A stretch of 63,912 bases of DNA, counting the filler, from Dimorphilus gyrociliatus (lineage: Eukaryota > Animalia > Annelida), in the NCBI GenBank assembly GCA_904063045.1. It is 7 parts of 7 records of this genome, joined end to end, with 100 filler letters (N's around TTAATTAATTAA, not from the genome) between each part and the next. Parts side by side here need not be neighbours in the genome. Positions count along the whole stretch, not along the records: positions 46,595 to 54,989 come from CAJFCJ010000205.1; 6 more parts are not named here. One strand, given 5' to 3'. A program made the position numbers and the translations under genes. Each line of letters starts with the position of its first letter. Positions within the stretch are counted from its first letter, which is position 1. The notes under the pieces are model-generated. The model made no database searches and had not been told where the DNA came from. It saw only the letters and a program-made list of their open reading frames with translations. Below, in pieces: positions 46,595-54,989 of the stretch.

Positions 46595-46599
46595 TTCAT

Positions 46600-46713
46600 G
46601 TGCATTCACTACTCAGATTTAGATGTACAAGTGGTCAATGCATTGGTAAAGGAGAAAAGTTCAATGGTGAAAGGAATTGCTTGGATTTATTAGATGAAAT
46701 ATGTCTCAATGGT
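46600..46713 (+). pseudogene. Isolated degenerate LDLa exon
   Basis: FRCTSGQCIGKGEKFNGERNCLDLLDEIC followed by a GTAAAT donor; one conserved Cys is replaced by Phe. Confidence 0.45.
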
Positions 46714-46914
46714 AAATGACCAGTTTTATTTGGATACAACAGAAAACCTCCCCAAATGCATGGTTTAACCCTAACCCTAACCTAGCCCTTGTCTCTCCTT
46801 AATCTTTTTGATTGCCCCTAACCCTTAGATGGAAGCCCCCTAACTACAAATCAAAAGCTACTTTACTCCTCCTAACCATTTTTCAATCCGAAATGTTGCT
46901 TTCAAAAATCTCAC

Positions 46915-48643
46915 AGGTGTTCCAGGTGTTGAAGATGTGTGTAATGCATACCTACTGACGCAGTCAGAGCAAGCTGATACTTGATTAACTGGAGAGGATG
47001 CTAAGTTACAATTTTTACAGTTGGAGGTTGCACTACCAGGACCAGTGTTACAAGCAACACATTCTGATTTATCTGCTTTCATAACAAAATTGGCATCACA
47101 TGTTTTACACTCGCATGCATCTGCATTCAGTTGTACCTCTGAACATCCTGTTTTTCCAGCTGTTGTACAAGCAATACAATCATCACCAGCACTGTTTAAT
47201 AATCTTGAAGCACCGCAATCACATGTGCATGATGTTGCTCCAGCAGCAACTATTTTTGTTCCTCCAGTACAAGTTTTTGAGCAAGCCACACATGATAATC
47301 CATCTTCAGCCAAAACATTTGCACCTGAACAGGCTGTACATGCTACTACATAGGCTCCATTTTTGAGTTTTAAAGTGAGAAGAACAATTGGGAATTTTAT
47401 CATTTTCTGTGCATCCTGGTAATGTAGGATGTTTATGATATACTTGTCCTGCTGTATCAGTAGTACATCTTCCACACATACACGTACCTCCTGAAGATAC
47501 AGCAAAAGCACAATTATTGAATTCAGCAGCAGTACATGCTACACAATCATATTTTGTTGGAGAAAAATCTAGAACAAATCCGGTAGTGCAACCCACACAT
47601 CGACCATCAGGTCCTGTAGCAGATGAAAATGGTCCTATTGAAATATATCCTTTGCAATTGCCTGACGCTTTTAGCTGCAGCAGCAACTGCACATGAAGTA
47701 ACTGATCTTCCTTCTCCCAGTGAGTAATTCTCTTTGCAGTTAGGTATTGATGCACATGTACCATCTGATAACAGTACTATATTATTAGCACATCTTACAC
47801 AATCGAGGGTAGATCCTGTGGGATTGTTATATTGCTGTAAACAATCAGGTATTTGAGTAGCAGAGGGAGGTGAACCAGTAACACAATCTCCGAGTATTCT
47901 ATTTGTATTTGGAATCTCTGTACCAACTGCAAATGTATCTCTGCATCTAATACATGCACAAGATGAAGCAGATGCTGGGCTACCAACTGATGCCCAGTTG
48001 GTATTACAATTGGGAATTGTAGCAGAACATGTAGCTACTGGCATTTGACAGTCAATACCAATTTTAGTTGGATCTGTACAAGCAGTACATATAATTGTTG
48101 CTGCACCACTTACAGTTTCACAATCAGTACAGCCAGCAGGGCATGGTGTACAAGAACCAGAAGCAACCAAATATCCTTTGGTGCATACTGCACATCTTGC
48201 ATGTTCTGGTGACCCAACTGCAATACTTGAAAATAATTTGCAGCCAGTAGGAATTGCTAAAAAAACATGGGAAACATACAGTTTAGAAAAGTTGTTTTCA
48301 TTAAAGTAATTATATATGTATGCATGTATCCACTCCATTTTTCTGAATAAAGTCCTGTTGACACTCAACAACTACAGCTGAACCAATGCTACCAGAACAC
48401 CAGAGAGCATTTGGAATTTCTTCAGCACAAGCTGTAAATTGTATTGAATGAATATATTTTGGATATCTATCTGTTAAATTATTTAAAAGCATTACCTTTA
48501 CAGGCTTGAATTCCAGAACTACCTTGTAGAAAAGAGTGTTTGCCAGAAATACTTACATCACCAATGCACTCATTTGCTTTGCATCTACAAGTACTTCCAG
48601 AAAGTTCTAAGAGTTTGCATTGAGGTGATGCAGGAGTACAATC
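46915..48643 (-). CDS. Multi-exon cysteine-rich (CXXC/furin-like repeat) extracellular protein, partial and frameshifted
   Basis: Repeated CxCxxC/CxxC units (CTPCPAGCTDCETV, CACIRCRD, CECKTCDANF). Exon 48643-48497 (DCTPASPQC...QACK) is bounded by AG and GT; donor GTGAGA near 46915. Confidence 0.7.
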
Positions 48644-48705
48644 TATAGAATATTTTTATTTGTTTTAGTATTTTTTTCTATAAAATATTCATTTTGTATA
48701 AGTAC

Positions 48706-49334
48706 TGTACAACTTTGGTTATATTTTACATGCTTGAACTCTATTATTTTATGCAACATATACATCTTAAAACCTACGCAAGAAAATACTATAACATTGG
48801 CCAAACATAAGTCTGATTAGTCAGCTTGGAGGCTCATCTTTAATTACCAATAAAGGTTTGGCCAAGTTATAATTTAATTAACTTGCCTAGGGTGTGGCCA
48901 AGTTATAATTCAATTAACCTTCCTAAATGTTCAACCTTGTAACATCCTGTTACTAAAGATAAATATGAACTACACATTTCGGCAACTGTAAAGTGAGGAT
49001 TGGATGTCAGAGACAAACCTCAAAGTATATAAATCCTCATTATTCTCATTTGGCATGCAGCTTCCATCTGGACCCAAGGACCTGGGAAAATCATCTGGAA
49101 ACAACCTCCACTGGAACCATCCATCTACTCCTCAACACTGGAAGACAGTTTGGTAATTTGGCAACCTGCTTTTACGAACTATCTACTCTGCTATCGAACT
49201 CTCATATTGCTACTTGCTTAAGTATTATTATTACGAATAAACCGTTTTAATTTAAACATTTGTTTAAAGGTTCGAGTAGAACCAGTATTGTTATAACTTG
49301 CAAACGCATAGATTTTGCCAGCAAGAGCAGTACA
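48706..49334 (+). mobile_element. Complete 629-bp 5' LTR of Ty3/Gypsy copy E
   Basis: TGTAC...GTACA termini; 36-bp internal duplication (48860/48896); TATATAAA at 49026; AATAAA at 49236; immediately followed by a PBS. Confidence 0.92.
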
Positions 49335-49338
49335 AATT

Positions 49339-49356
49339 TGGCGCAGTCGACAGGAT
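49339..49356 (+). promoter_or_regulatory. Primer-binding site complementary to a tRNA-Ser-type 3' end
   Basis: TGGCGCAGTCGACAGGAT, 4 nt after the LTR end; its reverse complement ATCCTGTCGACTGCGCCA ends in CCA. Confidence 0.8.
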
Positions 49357-49394
49357 CTTCTTTTGGTTTATTCAAAAGTTTTGAGAAAGTAAAT

Positions 49395-52300
49395 ATGGCA
49401 GAAGGAGAAAATGGAAATGCCACTGGGGCAGTTACAGACTCTAACCCTTCAACCCCAGCAACTCCAACAATTACAATTCAGCCAGCAGGAATGTCAGAAA
49501 GGCAACAAAGACTAATTGAAGACTATGATAGATTGGTGAGTGAAATGAAAAGAAATCGAATCACAATTCCAACAGATCATGGAGATGGAACACATCACCC
49601 AGCACAGAACCCAAATGTTGATATCACAACAGTAATTCAAGCATTAAGGGCTGCTTGGGACCGCCCTCAAAGAACTATTCTCAAGTTGTATGATGGAAGC
49701 AAGGAGTGTTCAAAATTCAAAGAAGACTTTAATCAGGCATGTTATGCTTATGGTTGGATAGGAGAAGATGTTGTGAAAGCAAATCTTTTAGATTATTTAA
49801 CTGGTCCTGCAAAGGATTTGGTGTTGGCTCTGGATGGAGAGCCTACTGTGGAGGAAATATGGAAAGCCCTCCATGACGAATTTGATCTGGATCCTTTGGA
49901 GTATCAAGAGAAATTGCTTAACTTAAAGCAAATGAATGGCGAAAGTGTGGTTCAGTTTGTTAATAGAGCAAAGAAATTGATAAAGAGGTTTTCTCCACCT
50001 AGACCAATGGAACCACAATTGCTTGCAACTATGAAAGAAATAAAACTGATGGAAGTTTTACAAAGAGGATTACAACAGGATATTCTACATTTAGTGTACA
50101 CCTTACATCCTAAATGTCAAACATTGGCAGAACTATATGAGGCTGCTAAGCAAGCAGAAACTTCATTAAAACTAACACAAAGAAAGCAGATCACAATGGT
50201 GTCAAAATTGGAAACTCAACAAAGAAAAGAGACCAAAAAGACCCAGGTAATCAGAAAAGATGCTTCTACAGAAACCCCAAATTTTTGGAATAGAAAGCAT
50301 GTACCTGACAACAAAAATGCTACTAAAGAAAAGTTTTCAAGCCAAAAAGTACAAAAGTATGCACCAACTACAACAAACAGGTATTATAAGAAAAATCAAC
50401 CAGCAAAGATGATACTGAAAGAGGAACCTAAGCTACAAAAATTAGAAACATTAGACAATGAAAGCATGTCAGAAAATGACGAAGTTCAAGATATTCTCTG
50501 TTTTTCAGATAGTGACGAATCCACTTGTCAGCTGTTACAAAGCAAACAATCTGAGCGAAATGCTTCAACATTTACTGGACAATTTGAAACTAATACTGGT
50601 TTTAAGTTTGATGCCTTGATAGACTCTGGTAGTGACAGATCTTTCATTTCAAAAAAGGTATTAAGACAAGTTCAAGGAAAAGCATCCTTCCCAGAACAAA
50701 CTGTGAAAAATGCTAGAGATGCTTCAGGAAATAGCATCGAGATATGTGGAGAAATCATTCTCAGACTTTATTTTAATGGAAAGATTATTAAACAACACTT
50801 TCTGATCAACAAAATCATTACACAACAATGTATTATTGGGTGTGACTTTCTACAACAAAATGGAGCTACCCTTGACTTTGGCAAGAGACAGATTATACTC
50901 CAGCCAGGTACAGAAAAGAATTACCCTGTTGGAACACAACACTTATCTTTCAAAGGATTTTACCCAGTTCCTCTTATTATGAAAAAGAATGAGAGTCAAA
51001 TACATACCCTTCAGACAACAATTGAACAAGAAAATCCCGAGATGAAGGACAAAGTTACCCAAATTCTGGCGAAATATAAAGAAACTATTGCAGAAGACAG
51101 ATTTGATATTGGCAATCCAGAGGTACCACCCTTGGAAATAACTCTTGAATCAGGTTCAACACCATATACACAAAGGCCATATAGAATGCCTCCTCAAAAA
51201 CAAGAAGAATGTAAGCAACAGATAGCTGAATTGGTAAAAAGCAAAGTTATTCAACCAAGCAAGAGCAATTGGGCTTCACCAATTGTTTTCGTAAGAAAGA
51301 AGGAAGGTAGTCTACGAATGTGTGTAGATTATAGAAAACTAAACAAAATGACAGTTAAAAACAAGTATCCACTGCCAAATCAAGATGATCTTTTTGACCA
51401 TTTGGGAGGAGGAAATAAATTCTTTTCTACAATGGATTTGACAAGTGCATACCACCACATTAACATCAAGAAAGAAGATAGGTCTAAAACAGCATTTATT
51501 ACACCTTTTGGCTTGTTTGAATTTATTAAGATGCCTTTTGGATTAACGAATGCCCCTCCTCATTTTAGTTATGTAATGAATTCATTTGTGCTAAAGGATG
51601 TAAAGCATTTGTGCCTAAACTACCTTGATGACATAATAATATTTACCAAGTCGCTGGACCAACATTGGGAAGCATTGGAGACCATCCTTCAACAGATTCA
51701 AAAGTACAATTTTAAGATTAAACTAAGTAAATGTGTGTTTTTGAAAGAACAAGTTCAATTCTTGGGACACATTGTATCAGAAAAGGGGATTGAAACAGAT
51801 AAGTCCAAGACAGATAAATTATATAATTTACAGCCACCAGTGTTTTGCAAATTCACTACTAAGCTTTGTTGCGTTTTGTGGCTATTACAGAAAATTTATA
51901 CAAGATTTTGCAAGAGTAGCTAAACCTCTGTATATGTTAATGAAACTACATGGGAAAAAGGATAAATTGCAATGGACTGAGGAAGCCAAGCAATCATTTT
52001 TCAAGTTGAGAGATGCAGTAGTTAACCCTCCTGTATTACAACTACCTGATTTTGCTAAAGATTTTCACTTAACAACAGATGCATCGAATGTAGCTGTAGG
52101 AGGAGTTCTTGAACAAGTTATGTAGATGAGAATGGGAAGAAAACAATGAAACCCATTGCCTATGCTTCAAAACAATTCAACAATAATCAAATGAAATATG
52201 CAGCCTATCAAAAGGAAGCATTTGGTGTTTACTGGGTTGTAAAGAAATTTTTACATTACCTTCAAGACAAGCCATTCTTTTTATATACTGACCATCAGAG

Positions 52301-54960
52301 TCTAGTACAAACATTTAAGCAAAACAAATTGAATGTCAGCACAGCAAAATGGGTCATGGCTTTAATGGATTTAAAATTTACAATTAACTATGTAACAGGA
52401 CGAAAAAATAGAGCAGATGCATTAACAAGATTAGAAGAATATACACCTCCAAGGAAAGTAACATTTGAAGAGCTAATTCATGGAAGAATCAAAGAGGAGA
52501 ATTCTCCCTCTATTTCAGTTAAAATGGAACAGTATGAACATACACCAGAGTTAACTTTTGTAGCTACCAGTGATAACAGTGAAAAGAAAATTGATTTGTC
52601 TTCTGTTGACTTACAGTCAGAGCAAGAAAAAGATGTGAATTTAAAATCAATTAAAGAATATTTAACACTGGATGGTCAGCTACCTATTCCTTATTTTGGA
52701 ACTTTTACACCTTTCATAATGGAGATGTTTGTTCACAAGGAAATGATCTGGATTATCCTTGAAGAAAGAAACATTCTGGTTTTACCTGACCATTTGATGC
52801 TAACTCTGCTCCCTAAATTCCATAAAAATAAAATTCACAATCACCATGGACCCAGAATGACATTACAAATAATTACAAAGACCTTTTGGCACCCAAAATT
52901 AAAGATTATGATTGAGAATTCAATAAAGGATTGCACTTTGTGTGAACAAATGAATGGTAGGAGTAAGTAGAGTATACCCTTTGGTAGAAACCTTTCACCC
53001 TGCATCACCAATGGAGTTGGTGGCCATGGATATAATGGGACCCTTACCCATGGTTAAGTCATACAGATTCATACTTGTGATAGTGGATCATTTCAGTAGA
53101 TACACAGTTTTATATGCACTCAAACAGCAAACCAGTAAAGAAATTGCAAACCTTCTTTTCAACAGATTTTTTCCCATTTTTGGAATTCCAAAACAAATGT
53201 TGACAGATCAAGGAAGAAACTTTGTTGGTAAAGCTTTTAAAGAGTTTATGAAGGTATTAGGTATTGAGAAAATCCAAACAACAGCTTATAGAAGCCAGAG
53301 CAATGGACTAGTTGAACGAAGAAATAGAGAAGTGAGGAAGGAAATCAATAAATTAGTGGTGGAAGAAAATCAGCATAACTGGGTTGCAAACCTACCCTTG
53401 ATTCAAGCATTTTTGAATCAATCACCTGTAGGAAGTACAAGACTACACCCAGGAACTTCTTTTTGGCACCAGCACAAGAACACTGATTGATGTAACAATG
53501 CATACTACCTCTCCTGAAACAAATGTACTATTTGTATTCAATCACCAGCAGCAATTAGTACAGTTAAGAGCTACAGCCTTCTGTAAATCCATCATGGCAA
53601 AAGAACAATATAGGGAAAGAAAGAATAGAAATCTCAATCTTCCAAAATATTTTGAGGTTGATGATGAAGTATTCTTAAGAAATGATGCTGCAAGAATTGC
53701 AATAACAAAAATCCCTTCTTTAAAATGGTTAGGCCCATACCGAATAACAAAAGTCAATCATCAAAAGTGGATATATGAAATACAAATGGATGATAATACA
53801 TGCAAGTTGGTACATGGTAGCAGATTAAGACTAGCCAATGAATCTAATAAGTTGGAAACAGGGAAAGAAGCAACAACAATCTTTCACCTTGTGGAGAAGG
53901 AAATAACACACCTCCAATATCTTTCTCAGGTAGAAGGAAGAAATGACTTCCAATTCCGTTTGAAGAATCAAAAAGGCCAAGAAGTCATTGCCTTGTGTGA
54001 CACAGGAGCATTGAGATCCTTTATTACTGAAAAAGAAATCAAGTTAATGGATGTTACAATTATGGATAAAGAAACAATTGGCTTACCAATTATAACTTCA
54101 GCTGATGGGAAAGCTTTAAAGCAAAAAGGAAGCGTAAAGCTGAATATCCAATTTGCTGGAGAAAGTATGGAACAAGAATTTATGTTATGGAAAATCTAGA
54201 CATAGCAATAATACTTGGTTGTGATTTCCTACAAACTGTGGGAGCAAACCTCAATTTTGAAGCTAAACAGTGTTCTCTCAAATTTGATAGAAGGAAAGGG
54301 AACCTGGCTGAAAGAATAAGGCAACCTCAACTAAACAAAGTCACTATAGCCATGATGGGACAGCATGACTCTTCATCAGAAAGCTTCAGATAGTGATGAC
54401 TCAGAGATGGAAGTTACTAATTCTGATACTGGTTATGACACAAGCAATACTTTCAAAACAGACAGTAATTACAGTCTCAATGAACCTTCAAGCTCATCTG
54501 AAAGTGATGACACAGAAACAAATAATGAACTGGATCAAAATACAGATTCAGAGGCAAACATTATCTCTGATAGAGAAGATGAAATACTAGTTCAGACATG
54601 AGTCAATAATTATTGAAAGCGAAATTATTGATATAACCCATTCGGATAATGAGTCAATAATTATTGAAGGTGAAATTATTGACATAACCCATTCAGATAA
54701 TGAGTCCCTCATAGTGGTAGATTCATCCCAAGATGAGAAAGAAAATACAAGTGACACAGACAATGAGTCAGTCATATTTTTTAGATGAGACTAAAATCAT
54801 CTCTGAACAATTAGATTCCCAACAAGAAGTGGAACCACAATATATAGAGTTAGAAGATGGAATAACTATCAGAGTGGAACAACAACACAAAATTTTCAAC
54901 CATTCAACTATAGCCAACACAGGAAGAGCTAACATGAAACAGATGTTTGGCTTCCACTAG
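49395..54960 (+). mobile_element. gag-pol: Ty3/Gypsy gag-pol: Gag (no CCHC), protease 1, RT, RNase H, integrase, GPY/F, protease 2, acidic tail; ~8 single-base indels after 51840
   Basis: DSG at 50622; RT LRMCVDYRKLN and YLDD at 51621; RNase H TTDASNVAVGGVL and KPIAYAS; integrase MDIMGP/TDQG/VER; WLGPY; second DTG at 53999. Domain order PR-RT-RH-IN is Ty3/Gypsy. Confidence 0.93.
54599..54706 (+). repeat. 51-bp (17-aa) tandem repeat in the element's acidic tail
   Basis: TGAGTC starts at 54599, 54650 and 54701; unit encodes NESIIIE(S/G)EIIDITHSD. Confidence 0.9.
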
Positions 54961-54989
54961 TGATGACTGTAATGGTGATCTGTGGCTGC

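Follow-up and report, generated by a model that had tools for sequence, protein, structure and literature searches.

The DNA analysed here is a stretch of 63,912 nucleotides from the annelid Dimorphilus gyrociliatus, joined from seven parts of assembly GCA_904063045.1, which we take to be the D. gyrociliatus assembly of the Dingle genome paper; the whole stretch is called the window, and positions refer to it unless another sequence is named. One of its parts (46,595 to 54,989, from CAJFCJ010000205.1) contains a copy of an env-carrying Ty3/gypsy (errantivirus-like) long terminal repeat (LTR) element, in which a complete second retropepsin (PR2) with intact-looking motifs follows the integrase (IN) and is a real part of the element. 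The whole element has the order LTR-gag-PR1-RT-RNaseH-IN-PR2-linker-env-LTR, where PR1 is the canonical protease and RT the reverse transcriptase, and most likely belongs to the published Dingle family of D. gyrociliatus. Sequence comparison indicates that PR2 and the acidic linker behind it were copied from a lineage like a sister element, B, after that lineage and the sublineage of the window copy (A) had split, and are not an old copy of PR1. This architecture and this origin are jointly held to be very likely, while the explanation as a whole, in which PR2 also works as a self-trimming protease, has about an even prospect of being right.

The original prediction placed a second, complete retropepsin behind the integrase in the same frame, and this is borne out. 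The open reading frame (ORF) at 53498-54199 takes in the integrase C-terminus (WLGPYRITKV ... VHGSRLRL), a linker of ~35 residues and the N-terminal half of PR2. The catalytic Asp codon of the DTG motif is at 53999-54001, in the context ALCDTGAL (53990-54013), which has the pattern of two hydrophobic residues followed by D-T/S-G-A, and the C-terminal half, which includes IILGCDFL (54208-54231), is picked up in the -1 frame at 54187. The parts of a full single-lobe retropepsin fold are present, including the flap region and the C-terminal I-I/L-G-x-D-F-L helix, and the catalytic DTG and ILGCDFL motifs are both intact. With an X placed at the frame break, PR2 aligns with PR1 colinearly over the whole domain (30% identity over 111 residues, E 1e-11; N-terminal half alone, E 6e-7), and the canonical proteases of B and of a further related element, C, are colinear with it for ~134 residues. 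Recognition by profiles was partial: PR1 exceeds the Pfam RVP cut-off (24.6 vs 20.7 bits) and the canonical protease of B, the nearest relative of PR2, exceeds those of RVP and RVP_2, while the N-terminal half of PR2, a half-domain query, remained sub-threshold on its own (Asp_protease_2, E 0.033); a family profile that combines the PR2 halves with related sequences matches the solved structure of retroviral-like aspartic protease 1 (E 1.5e-5) and DDI1/DDI2.

The element is interrupted in the window by about ten indel breaks, which were compared with other sources. Contigs from four public runs were aligned to 49000-54989, comprising the short-read contig sets X2 and X3 (one organism) and X5 (another organism), and X6, a run that looks bisulfite-converted from its surplus of C>T and G>A changes. 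Another contig of the same assembly (L001), reached through the gene model P0006, a match of an exhaustive protein search, carries a second public copy of the element. The region from integrase through PR2 to the tail is bridged by the three short-read sets (X2, 53068-54989; X3, 50780-54989; X5, 51687-54874) and by L001 (99% identity over 1.78 kb). X2, X3 and X5 show length differences of 1-4 bases at or beside the window breaks at ~51843, 52117, 52962, 53445/53447, 54183, 54384, 54586, 54777 and 54947, a further break near 54597 being backed only by the comparison with L001, and adding up the short-read length differences from one ORF piece to the next reproduces the frame offsets of the pieces. 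L001 sides with the short reads at all window breaks downstream of 53214, and has two private breaks elsewhere in PR2. The window breaks are assembly errors, and the assembly of the published D. gyrociliatus genome from PacBio reads fits such indel errors. Since no checkable break is common to independent sources, the element is read as one frame (gag-PR1-RT-RNaseH-IN-PR2-acidic linker-env).

The break at ~54183, inside PR2, had been read as a -1 indel; L001 and all three short-read contig sets differ from the window in length at this place, and the frameshift is an assembly error. A programmed frameshift inside the protease was considered because element C shifts frame in the same loop, and was rejected on the absence of the window break from L001 and all short-read contigs. 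Element C itself (L003:2190-2230, also L002; two marine metagenome assemblies) changes frame within its canonical protease, a few bases from the position of the window break and in the opposite direction of shift, and its frame change is probably a lesion, not a conserved frameshift signal.

The same sources bear on whether the arrangement could be an artefact of chimeric assembly, or a nested element in which a second, truncated copy begins behind the first. The error-prone assembly of the window lends this some colour, but the IN-PR2-linker-env join is bridged by X2, X3, X5 and L001, which disposes of a chimeric join. A nested or tandem second element was rejected as well: no LTR, primer-binding site (PBS) or target site duplication was found between IN and PR2, both junctions are in frame, and a single LTR pair encloses all parts, including PR2, linker and env. 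An origin of this kind is scarcely credible. The window and L001 differ by 7 substitutions in 1.78 kb and in their flanks (GTAC before the 5' LTR of the window, ATAA after the 3' LTR of L001), so that they are probably two separate insertions, each with PR2. PR2 is present in L001 and the short-read copies and absent from lineage B. A further joint, from 51344 to 54386, was observed in X5 and X6, where contigs ~89% identical to the window pass from the RT start to the acidic tail across 21-24 letters of other sequence. This derivative is internally deleted and has no RT-IN-PR2, and it implies that an older A-type ancestor had the tail behind RT. No joint removing just the captured block was present among the listed contig joints.

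PR2 is not the C-terminal end of pol: an acidic linker of ~200 residues and a glycoprotein B (gB)-like env follow in the same frame, mostly past the edge of the piece. In L001, one ORF of 1055 residues (L001:975-4142) comprises the C-terminal half of PR2, the ~200-residue Ser/Asp/Glu-rich linker and env, with a hydrophobic signal-like segment at residue 253, a large ectodomain containing 19 Cys and, from residue 978, a C-terminal membrane segment with a short tail behind it. After the env stop, there is a polypurine tract and then a 636-nucleotide LTR stretch 97.5% identical to window 48706-49334. Language-model features of the env ORF match class III fusion glycoproteins (rhabdovirus G, gB, gp64; scores 0.93-0.95), and the protein is predicted to be a class III (gB-like) fusogen; by sequence, a phmmer search of env against solved structures gave no match and Pfam gave insignificant matches only, and word-based protein searches with the ORF of PR2 C-half, linker and env, whole and env-only, gave no match. 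The element thus has a membrane fusion glycoprotein gene between integrase and 3' LTR, as in env-carrying gypsy elements. Its assignment to Ty3/gypsy (Metaviridae) follows from the Pfam-supported pol order PR-RT-RNaseH-IN with an H2C2 and rve integrase, and from LTRs with TG...CA ends, a PBS-like stretch at 49339 and the polypurine tract AAAGAAGGGGGAAG ahead of the 3' LTR.

The minus strand of L001 carries a second Dingle element, B, with the canonical order, which is taken to be the ancestral one. Its 1436-residue ORF comprises gag (29-30% identical to that of the window element), protease (DSG ... IILGCDFL), a long acidic linker with three SMIVIDSSEEE-type repeats, RT and RNase H, with the integrase next. 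The pol of B stops ~25 codons past ...RLRLA, and its end is overlapped in another frame by env, a separate ORF that has an ATG and a signal peptide of its own; no protease was found after the integrase in element B. A run of N (L001:11960-14280) has removed most of the env of B, of which the first 116 residues only are comparable.

The PR2 block of the window is colinear with the canonical protease of B together with its protease-RT linker (L001:19089-17812, minus strand), at 53% amino acid identity over 144 residues (tblastn) and 76% nucleotide identity over 357 nucleotides (blastn). The match starts just past ...RLRLAN of the window and ends at ...YIELEDGITI(R/K)VE, the acidic linker alone being 53% identical to the protease-RT linker of B over 191 codons. 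Downstream of the block, a short stretch like the last codons of the pol of B (...KQM) is followed by the env signal peptide in the pol frame. By this comparison, the block is an insertion of about 1.05 kb (about 53843-54890) within the last ~20 codons of the integrase, in frame at both junctions. The linkers of A and B (54598-54699; L001:17800-18400, minus strand) both contain tandem repeats in which Ser/Asp/Glu residues come after a hydrophobic core, e.g. SLIVVDSSQDE and SMIVIDSSEEE, which we take to resemble SUMO-interaction motifs.

The original prediction left the choice between an old duplication and a capture, and of these capture stands, with a lineage like B as the probable donor. PR2 is 65-72% identical to the protease of B, depending on the stretch aligned (65-66% when all proteases are compared together), 59% to that of a metagenome relative, D, and 44-45% to that of C, also a metagenome relative, as against only 26-27% to PR1 (multi-protease comparison). 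In a maximum-likelihood (ML) protease tree, PR1 stands alone on a long branch, while PR2, B and the pair of C and D (support 96/97) fall together. The RT gives a different picture, with identities of 66.5% for B and C, 60.6% for A and B and 56.8% for A and C; A has the most distant RT of the three, so that its own pol lies outside B and C, whereas PR2 groups with them. Between A and B, the synonymous difference (pS) is 0.55 (confidence interval 0.48-0.65) in the block and 0.77 (0.73-0.82), saturated, in RT-IN. The spacing between protease and RT in element C is just ~56 residues longer than in A; the long acidic linker thus appears to be a trait of the B lineage, so that transfer would have run from a B-like element to A. 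Together, the higher identity of PR2 to B, the tree, the lower pS of the block and the B-type linker argue for a capture after A and B had separated. The env of A may or may not derive from B as well, its N-terminus and those of B and D being roughly as far from each other (47-51% identity), with noisy pS.

An origin of PR2 by old duplication, as a paralogue of PR1 that arose within the element, would draw on the facts that both are retropepsins and have the GCDFLQ..GA motif in common. That motif had been read as a trace of an old duplication or capture, and its presence in PR1 and PR2 stands; but the signature (GCDFLQ..GA..F...Q) is family-wide, occurring also in B, in C and in the protease fragment of P0006, with a variant in D, and is not a sign of duplication. 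The identities just given and the isolated position of PR1 in the tree are at odds with a paralogue, the homology to B continues for ~200 codons past the protease into a linker that PR1 does not have, and at synonymous sites the block is closer to B than the remainder of pol is. A duplication of PR1 is accordingly very improbable.

As a mechanism of capture, the most economical proposal is that A-type and B-type RNAs were packaged together and underwent copy-choice recombination while being reverse transcribed. The B-type partner was perhaps an internally deleted gag-PR-...-env derivative, from which one template switch to an A-type genome would suffice to produce the order of parts seen. Another internally deleted derivative is the one with the joint from 51344 to 54386, and a model for the gag-PR-...-env type is element D (L004:1-1521, metagenome), in which a gag C-terminus, complete protease, short linker, integrase C-terminus and env start follow one another, and which is a non-autonomous gag-PR-env derivative without RT, RNase H and integrase core.

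Whether PR2 is still active and used is a separate question, and the sequence gives a positive answer somewhat less than an even prospect. With the DTG and the ILGxDFL helix retained, and with PR2 presumably made in every Gag-Pol chain, PR2 probably still folds and dimerises. The block may have brought with it boundaries that serve as processing sites in the donor, and PR2 may then act as a self-trimming module, cutting itself and the linker from the integrase C-terminus and parting Pol from the env signal peptide; this would explain how an in-frame insertion is tolerated even though pol now runs into env. The pairwise dN/dS (nonsynonymous to synonymous rate ratio) between PR2 and the protease of B is ~0.23, and no true stop or real frameshift is present in about 350 codons across all sources. 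The roles suggested in the original prediction, in which PR2 would release a new C-terminal product, form heterodimers with PR1 or cleave host proteins, are conjectural.

Several observations weigh against such use. PR2 has 16 unique residue changes compared with 7 for the protease of B (p 0.06), and its ML branch is 0.36 compared with 0.05 for B, although those of C (0.55) and D (0.30) are longer or comparable; the longer branch fits relaxed constraint, and the rate tests are ambiguous. Lineage B and the other env-bearing gypsy elements examined or found described manage with one protease, and PR1 looks intact. Among the copies compared, the arrangement is seen in a single sublineage (A). If Env is made from a spliced mRNA at its own ATG (54934), PR2 may be unneeded at the Pol/Env boundary. 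X5 has a 60-nucleotide in-frame gap inside PR2, and if X5 is DNA, that copy has lost part of the fold.

The gap in X5 is an observation of its own. The main X5 contig (depth 677) skips exactly 60 bases, at window 54027-54086. On the minus strand, the skipped segment starts with GTAAG and ends with TTTTTCAG, resembling a short intron, and the median intron of the host is 66 bp. The skip is either a spliced antisense transcript, if X5 is RNA, or else an in-frame loss of 20 residues inside PR2.

PR2 may instead be a tolerated passenger, brought in with the block by an illegitimate template switch, unused and still undecayed. The element would then work either with an integrase that puts up with extra residues at its C-terminus, or through trimming by PR1 or signal peptidase. 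Recombination by itself accounts for the anatomy, and deleted or rearranged derivatives are common in the family (element D; the joints from 51344 to 54386); the longer branch of PR2, the gap in X5 and the lack of PR2 in lineage B point the same way. Against it are the absence of stops and real frameshifts from every independent copy, the intact catalytic and structural motifs, the low dN/dS, and the occurrence of the layout in at least two insertions and the ~89%-identical derivative, none of them decisive, because the age of the capture is not fixed. An idle PR2 is a possibility to be taken seriously, if a lesser one than a working protease.

Selection may alternatively have acted on the acidic linker and not on the protease, with putative SUMO-binding repeats on the integrase C-terminus steering integration and PR2 hitch-hiking. 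The repeats of hydrophobic core and Ser/acidic residues do occur in the linkers of both A and B, but the proposal is one of motif resemblance only. In B, moreover, the linker sits between protease and RT, not on the integrase, and a PR2 that trims itself off the integrase would take the linker with it. The block occupies the site where chromoviruses carry a targeting domain (cited in PMC13524379), and a targeting role is nonetheless quite unlikely. A further reading extends the self-trimming function of PR2 to Env expression: Env might be made by proteolysis of a single Gag-Pol-Env polyprotein, in place of or besides a spliced mRNA, with PR2 as a dedicated Pol/Env cutter that frees the integrase. 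This is unlikely, though if true it would represent a retroelement with the polyprotein logic of a plus-strand RNA virus, obtained through a protease borrowed from a sister element.

Features of the A-type element in the window, with coordinates, strand and basis of assignment.
Feature	Position	Strand	Basis or remark
5' LTR	48706..49334	+	TG...CA, terminal TGTAC/GTACA; 97.5% identity over 636 aligned nucleotides to L001:4174-4809
Primer-binding-site-like stretch, starts TGG, 4 nucleotides past LTR	49339..49356	+	read directly from the sequence
gag, first ATG of long frame	49395..50540	+	ORF 49260-51923; weak PNMA/gag-like Pfam match
PR1, canonical protease, DSG 50622-50630, IIGCDFL	50571..50897	+	Pfam RVP
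Reverse transcriptase and RNase H, three frames in window	51291..52367	+	Pfam RVT_1 E 8e-34, RT_RNaseH, RT_RNaseH_2
Integrase: H2C2 zinc domain, rve core, GPY/F module ending ...GSRLRLAN	52785..53842	+	Pfam Integrase_H2C2, rve; WLGPYRI read directly
Captured block: protease N-flank, PR2 and acidic linker	53843..54890	+	homology to the protease and protease-RT linker of B
PR2 retropepsin core, DTG 53999-54007, IILGCDFL 54208-54231	53942..54282	+	alignment, profile
Acidic Ser/Asp/Glu-rich linker, 51-nucleotide tandem repeat at 54598-54699	54283..54890	+	frame breaks near 54384, 54586, 54597, 54777
Integrase-tail remnant, weakly homologous to last pol codons of B	54891..54933	+	nucleotide and protein comparison with L001:14640-14900, minus strand
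env start: ATG and signal-peptide-like hydrophobic stretch, ends at edge of piece	54934..54989	+	one window-only frame break near 54947

Some further features were observed in and around the element. The LTR contains a 36-nucleotide tandem duplication (48855-48925), and the LTR part of X5 is ~28x deeper than the element interior, compared with 3-4x in X2 and X3. Upstream of the element, on the minus strand, a gene for a cysteine-rich repeat protein (46858-48371) is split over three overlapping frames, and its ORFs have no Pfam match; the frame splits may be assembly indels like those of the element, or short introns. The gene model P0006 (L001:9986-11550) begins inside a Dingle protease fragment that is 5'-truncated and 61% identical to PR2, and continues as a TIR-domain protein (Pfam TIR_2, E 7e-20); either annotation has joined the two wrongly, or a host gene has acquired a piece of a transposon.

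To our knowledge, few features of LTR retroelements and retroviruses are as conserved as the order of the pol domains, and no described layout that was found has a second protease behind the integrase. The original prediction knew of no family with this order, and the literature and protein searches found none. No paper on LTR retrotransposons with two proteases came up in a literature search, an exhaustive protein search with the integrase C-terminus and PR2 N-half gave 9 matches among 1.8 billion representatives, none with integrase and then protease, and a metagenome scan with IN-PR2 gave no match. By sequence, the case illustrates a route to a new order, in which a protease-plus-linker block would be copied between co-resident sublineages and land in frame between integrase and env. 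The presence of A-type and B-type elements in one 74-Mb genome makes a tractable system for the tolerance or use of two different proteases, and for the expression of env when pol and env are in one frame. If PR2 is a passenger, the element still shows clearly how errantivirus-like elements exchange modules by recombination, and no more.

Among known systems, the alphavirus capsid autoprotease and the flavivirus capsid-prM junction have a polyprotein protease directly upstream of an envelope signal peptide, with cleavage instead of a separate mRNA. The proteases are unrelated and the viruses are RNA viruses; for the window element the mechanism is conjecture and the likeness one of working principle only. 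Chromoviruses likewise carry an extra module on the integrase C-terminus, past GPY/F; theirs is a chromodomain, whereas the window element has a protease and acidic linker, and a Pfam scan of its post-integrase pieces gave no chromodomain match. The Dinophilidae Gypsy-like elements (Dingle) of Martin-Duran et al. 2020 (PMC7854359) have, according to the text and supplements of that paper, a gB-like protein downstream of the integrase, recognized by an HHpred match to gB; the same text and supplements mention neither a second protease nor an acidic linker, though the domain figure of the paper may show such a domain. They have in common with the window element the host, the Ty3/gypsy pol and a gB-modelled protein 3' of the integrase, the env of the window element likewise being class III by feature search; the difference is that at least two sublineages are present here, B with canonical order and A with the extra block. 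The errantiviruses of metazoans with a herpes simplex virus (HSV)/gB-type env, surveyed in 2026 (PMC13524379), are similar in their GAG-POL-ENV organization, tRNA primer site, gB-type env, annelid clades and within-host recombination between elements. Their pol is PRO-RT-RNaseH-IN with one protease, and the survey makes no mention of a second in env-carrying gypsy elements, whereas the window element has a second protease between IN and ENV, with pol and env in one frame. A precedent for an enzymatic pol domain that occurs twice in an LTR retroelement is the duplicated RNase H of retroviruses and insect errantiviruses (Malik and Eickbush 2001, as cited in PMC13524379). As described there, the second RNase H is a tandem copy, one of the two having degenerated into a tether, whereas PR2 appears to come from another lineage, sits at a distant site and has kept its catalytic motif.

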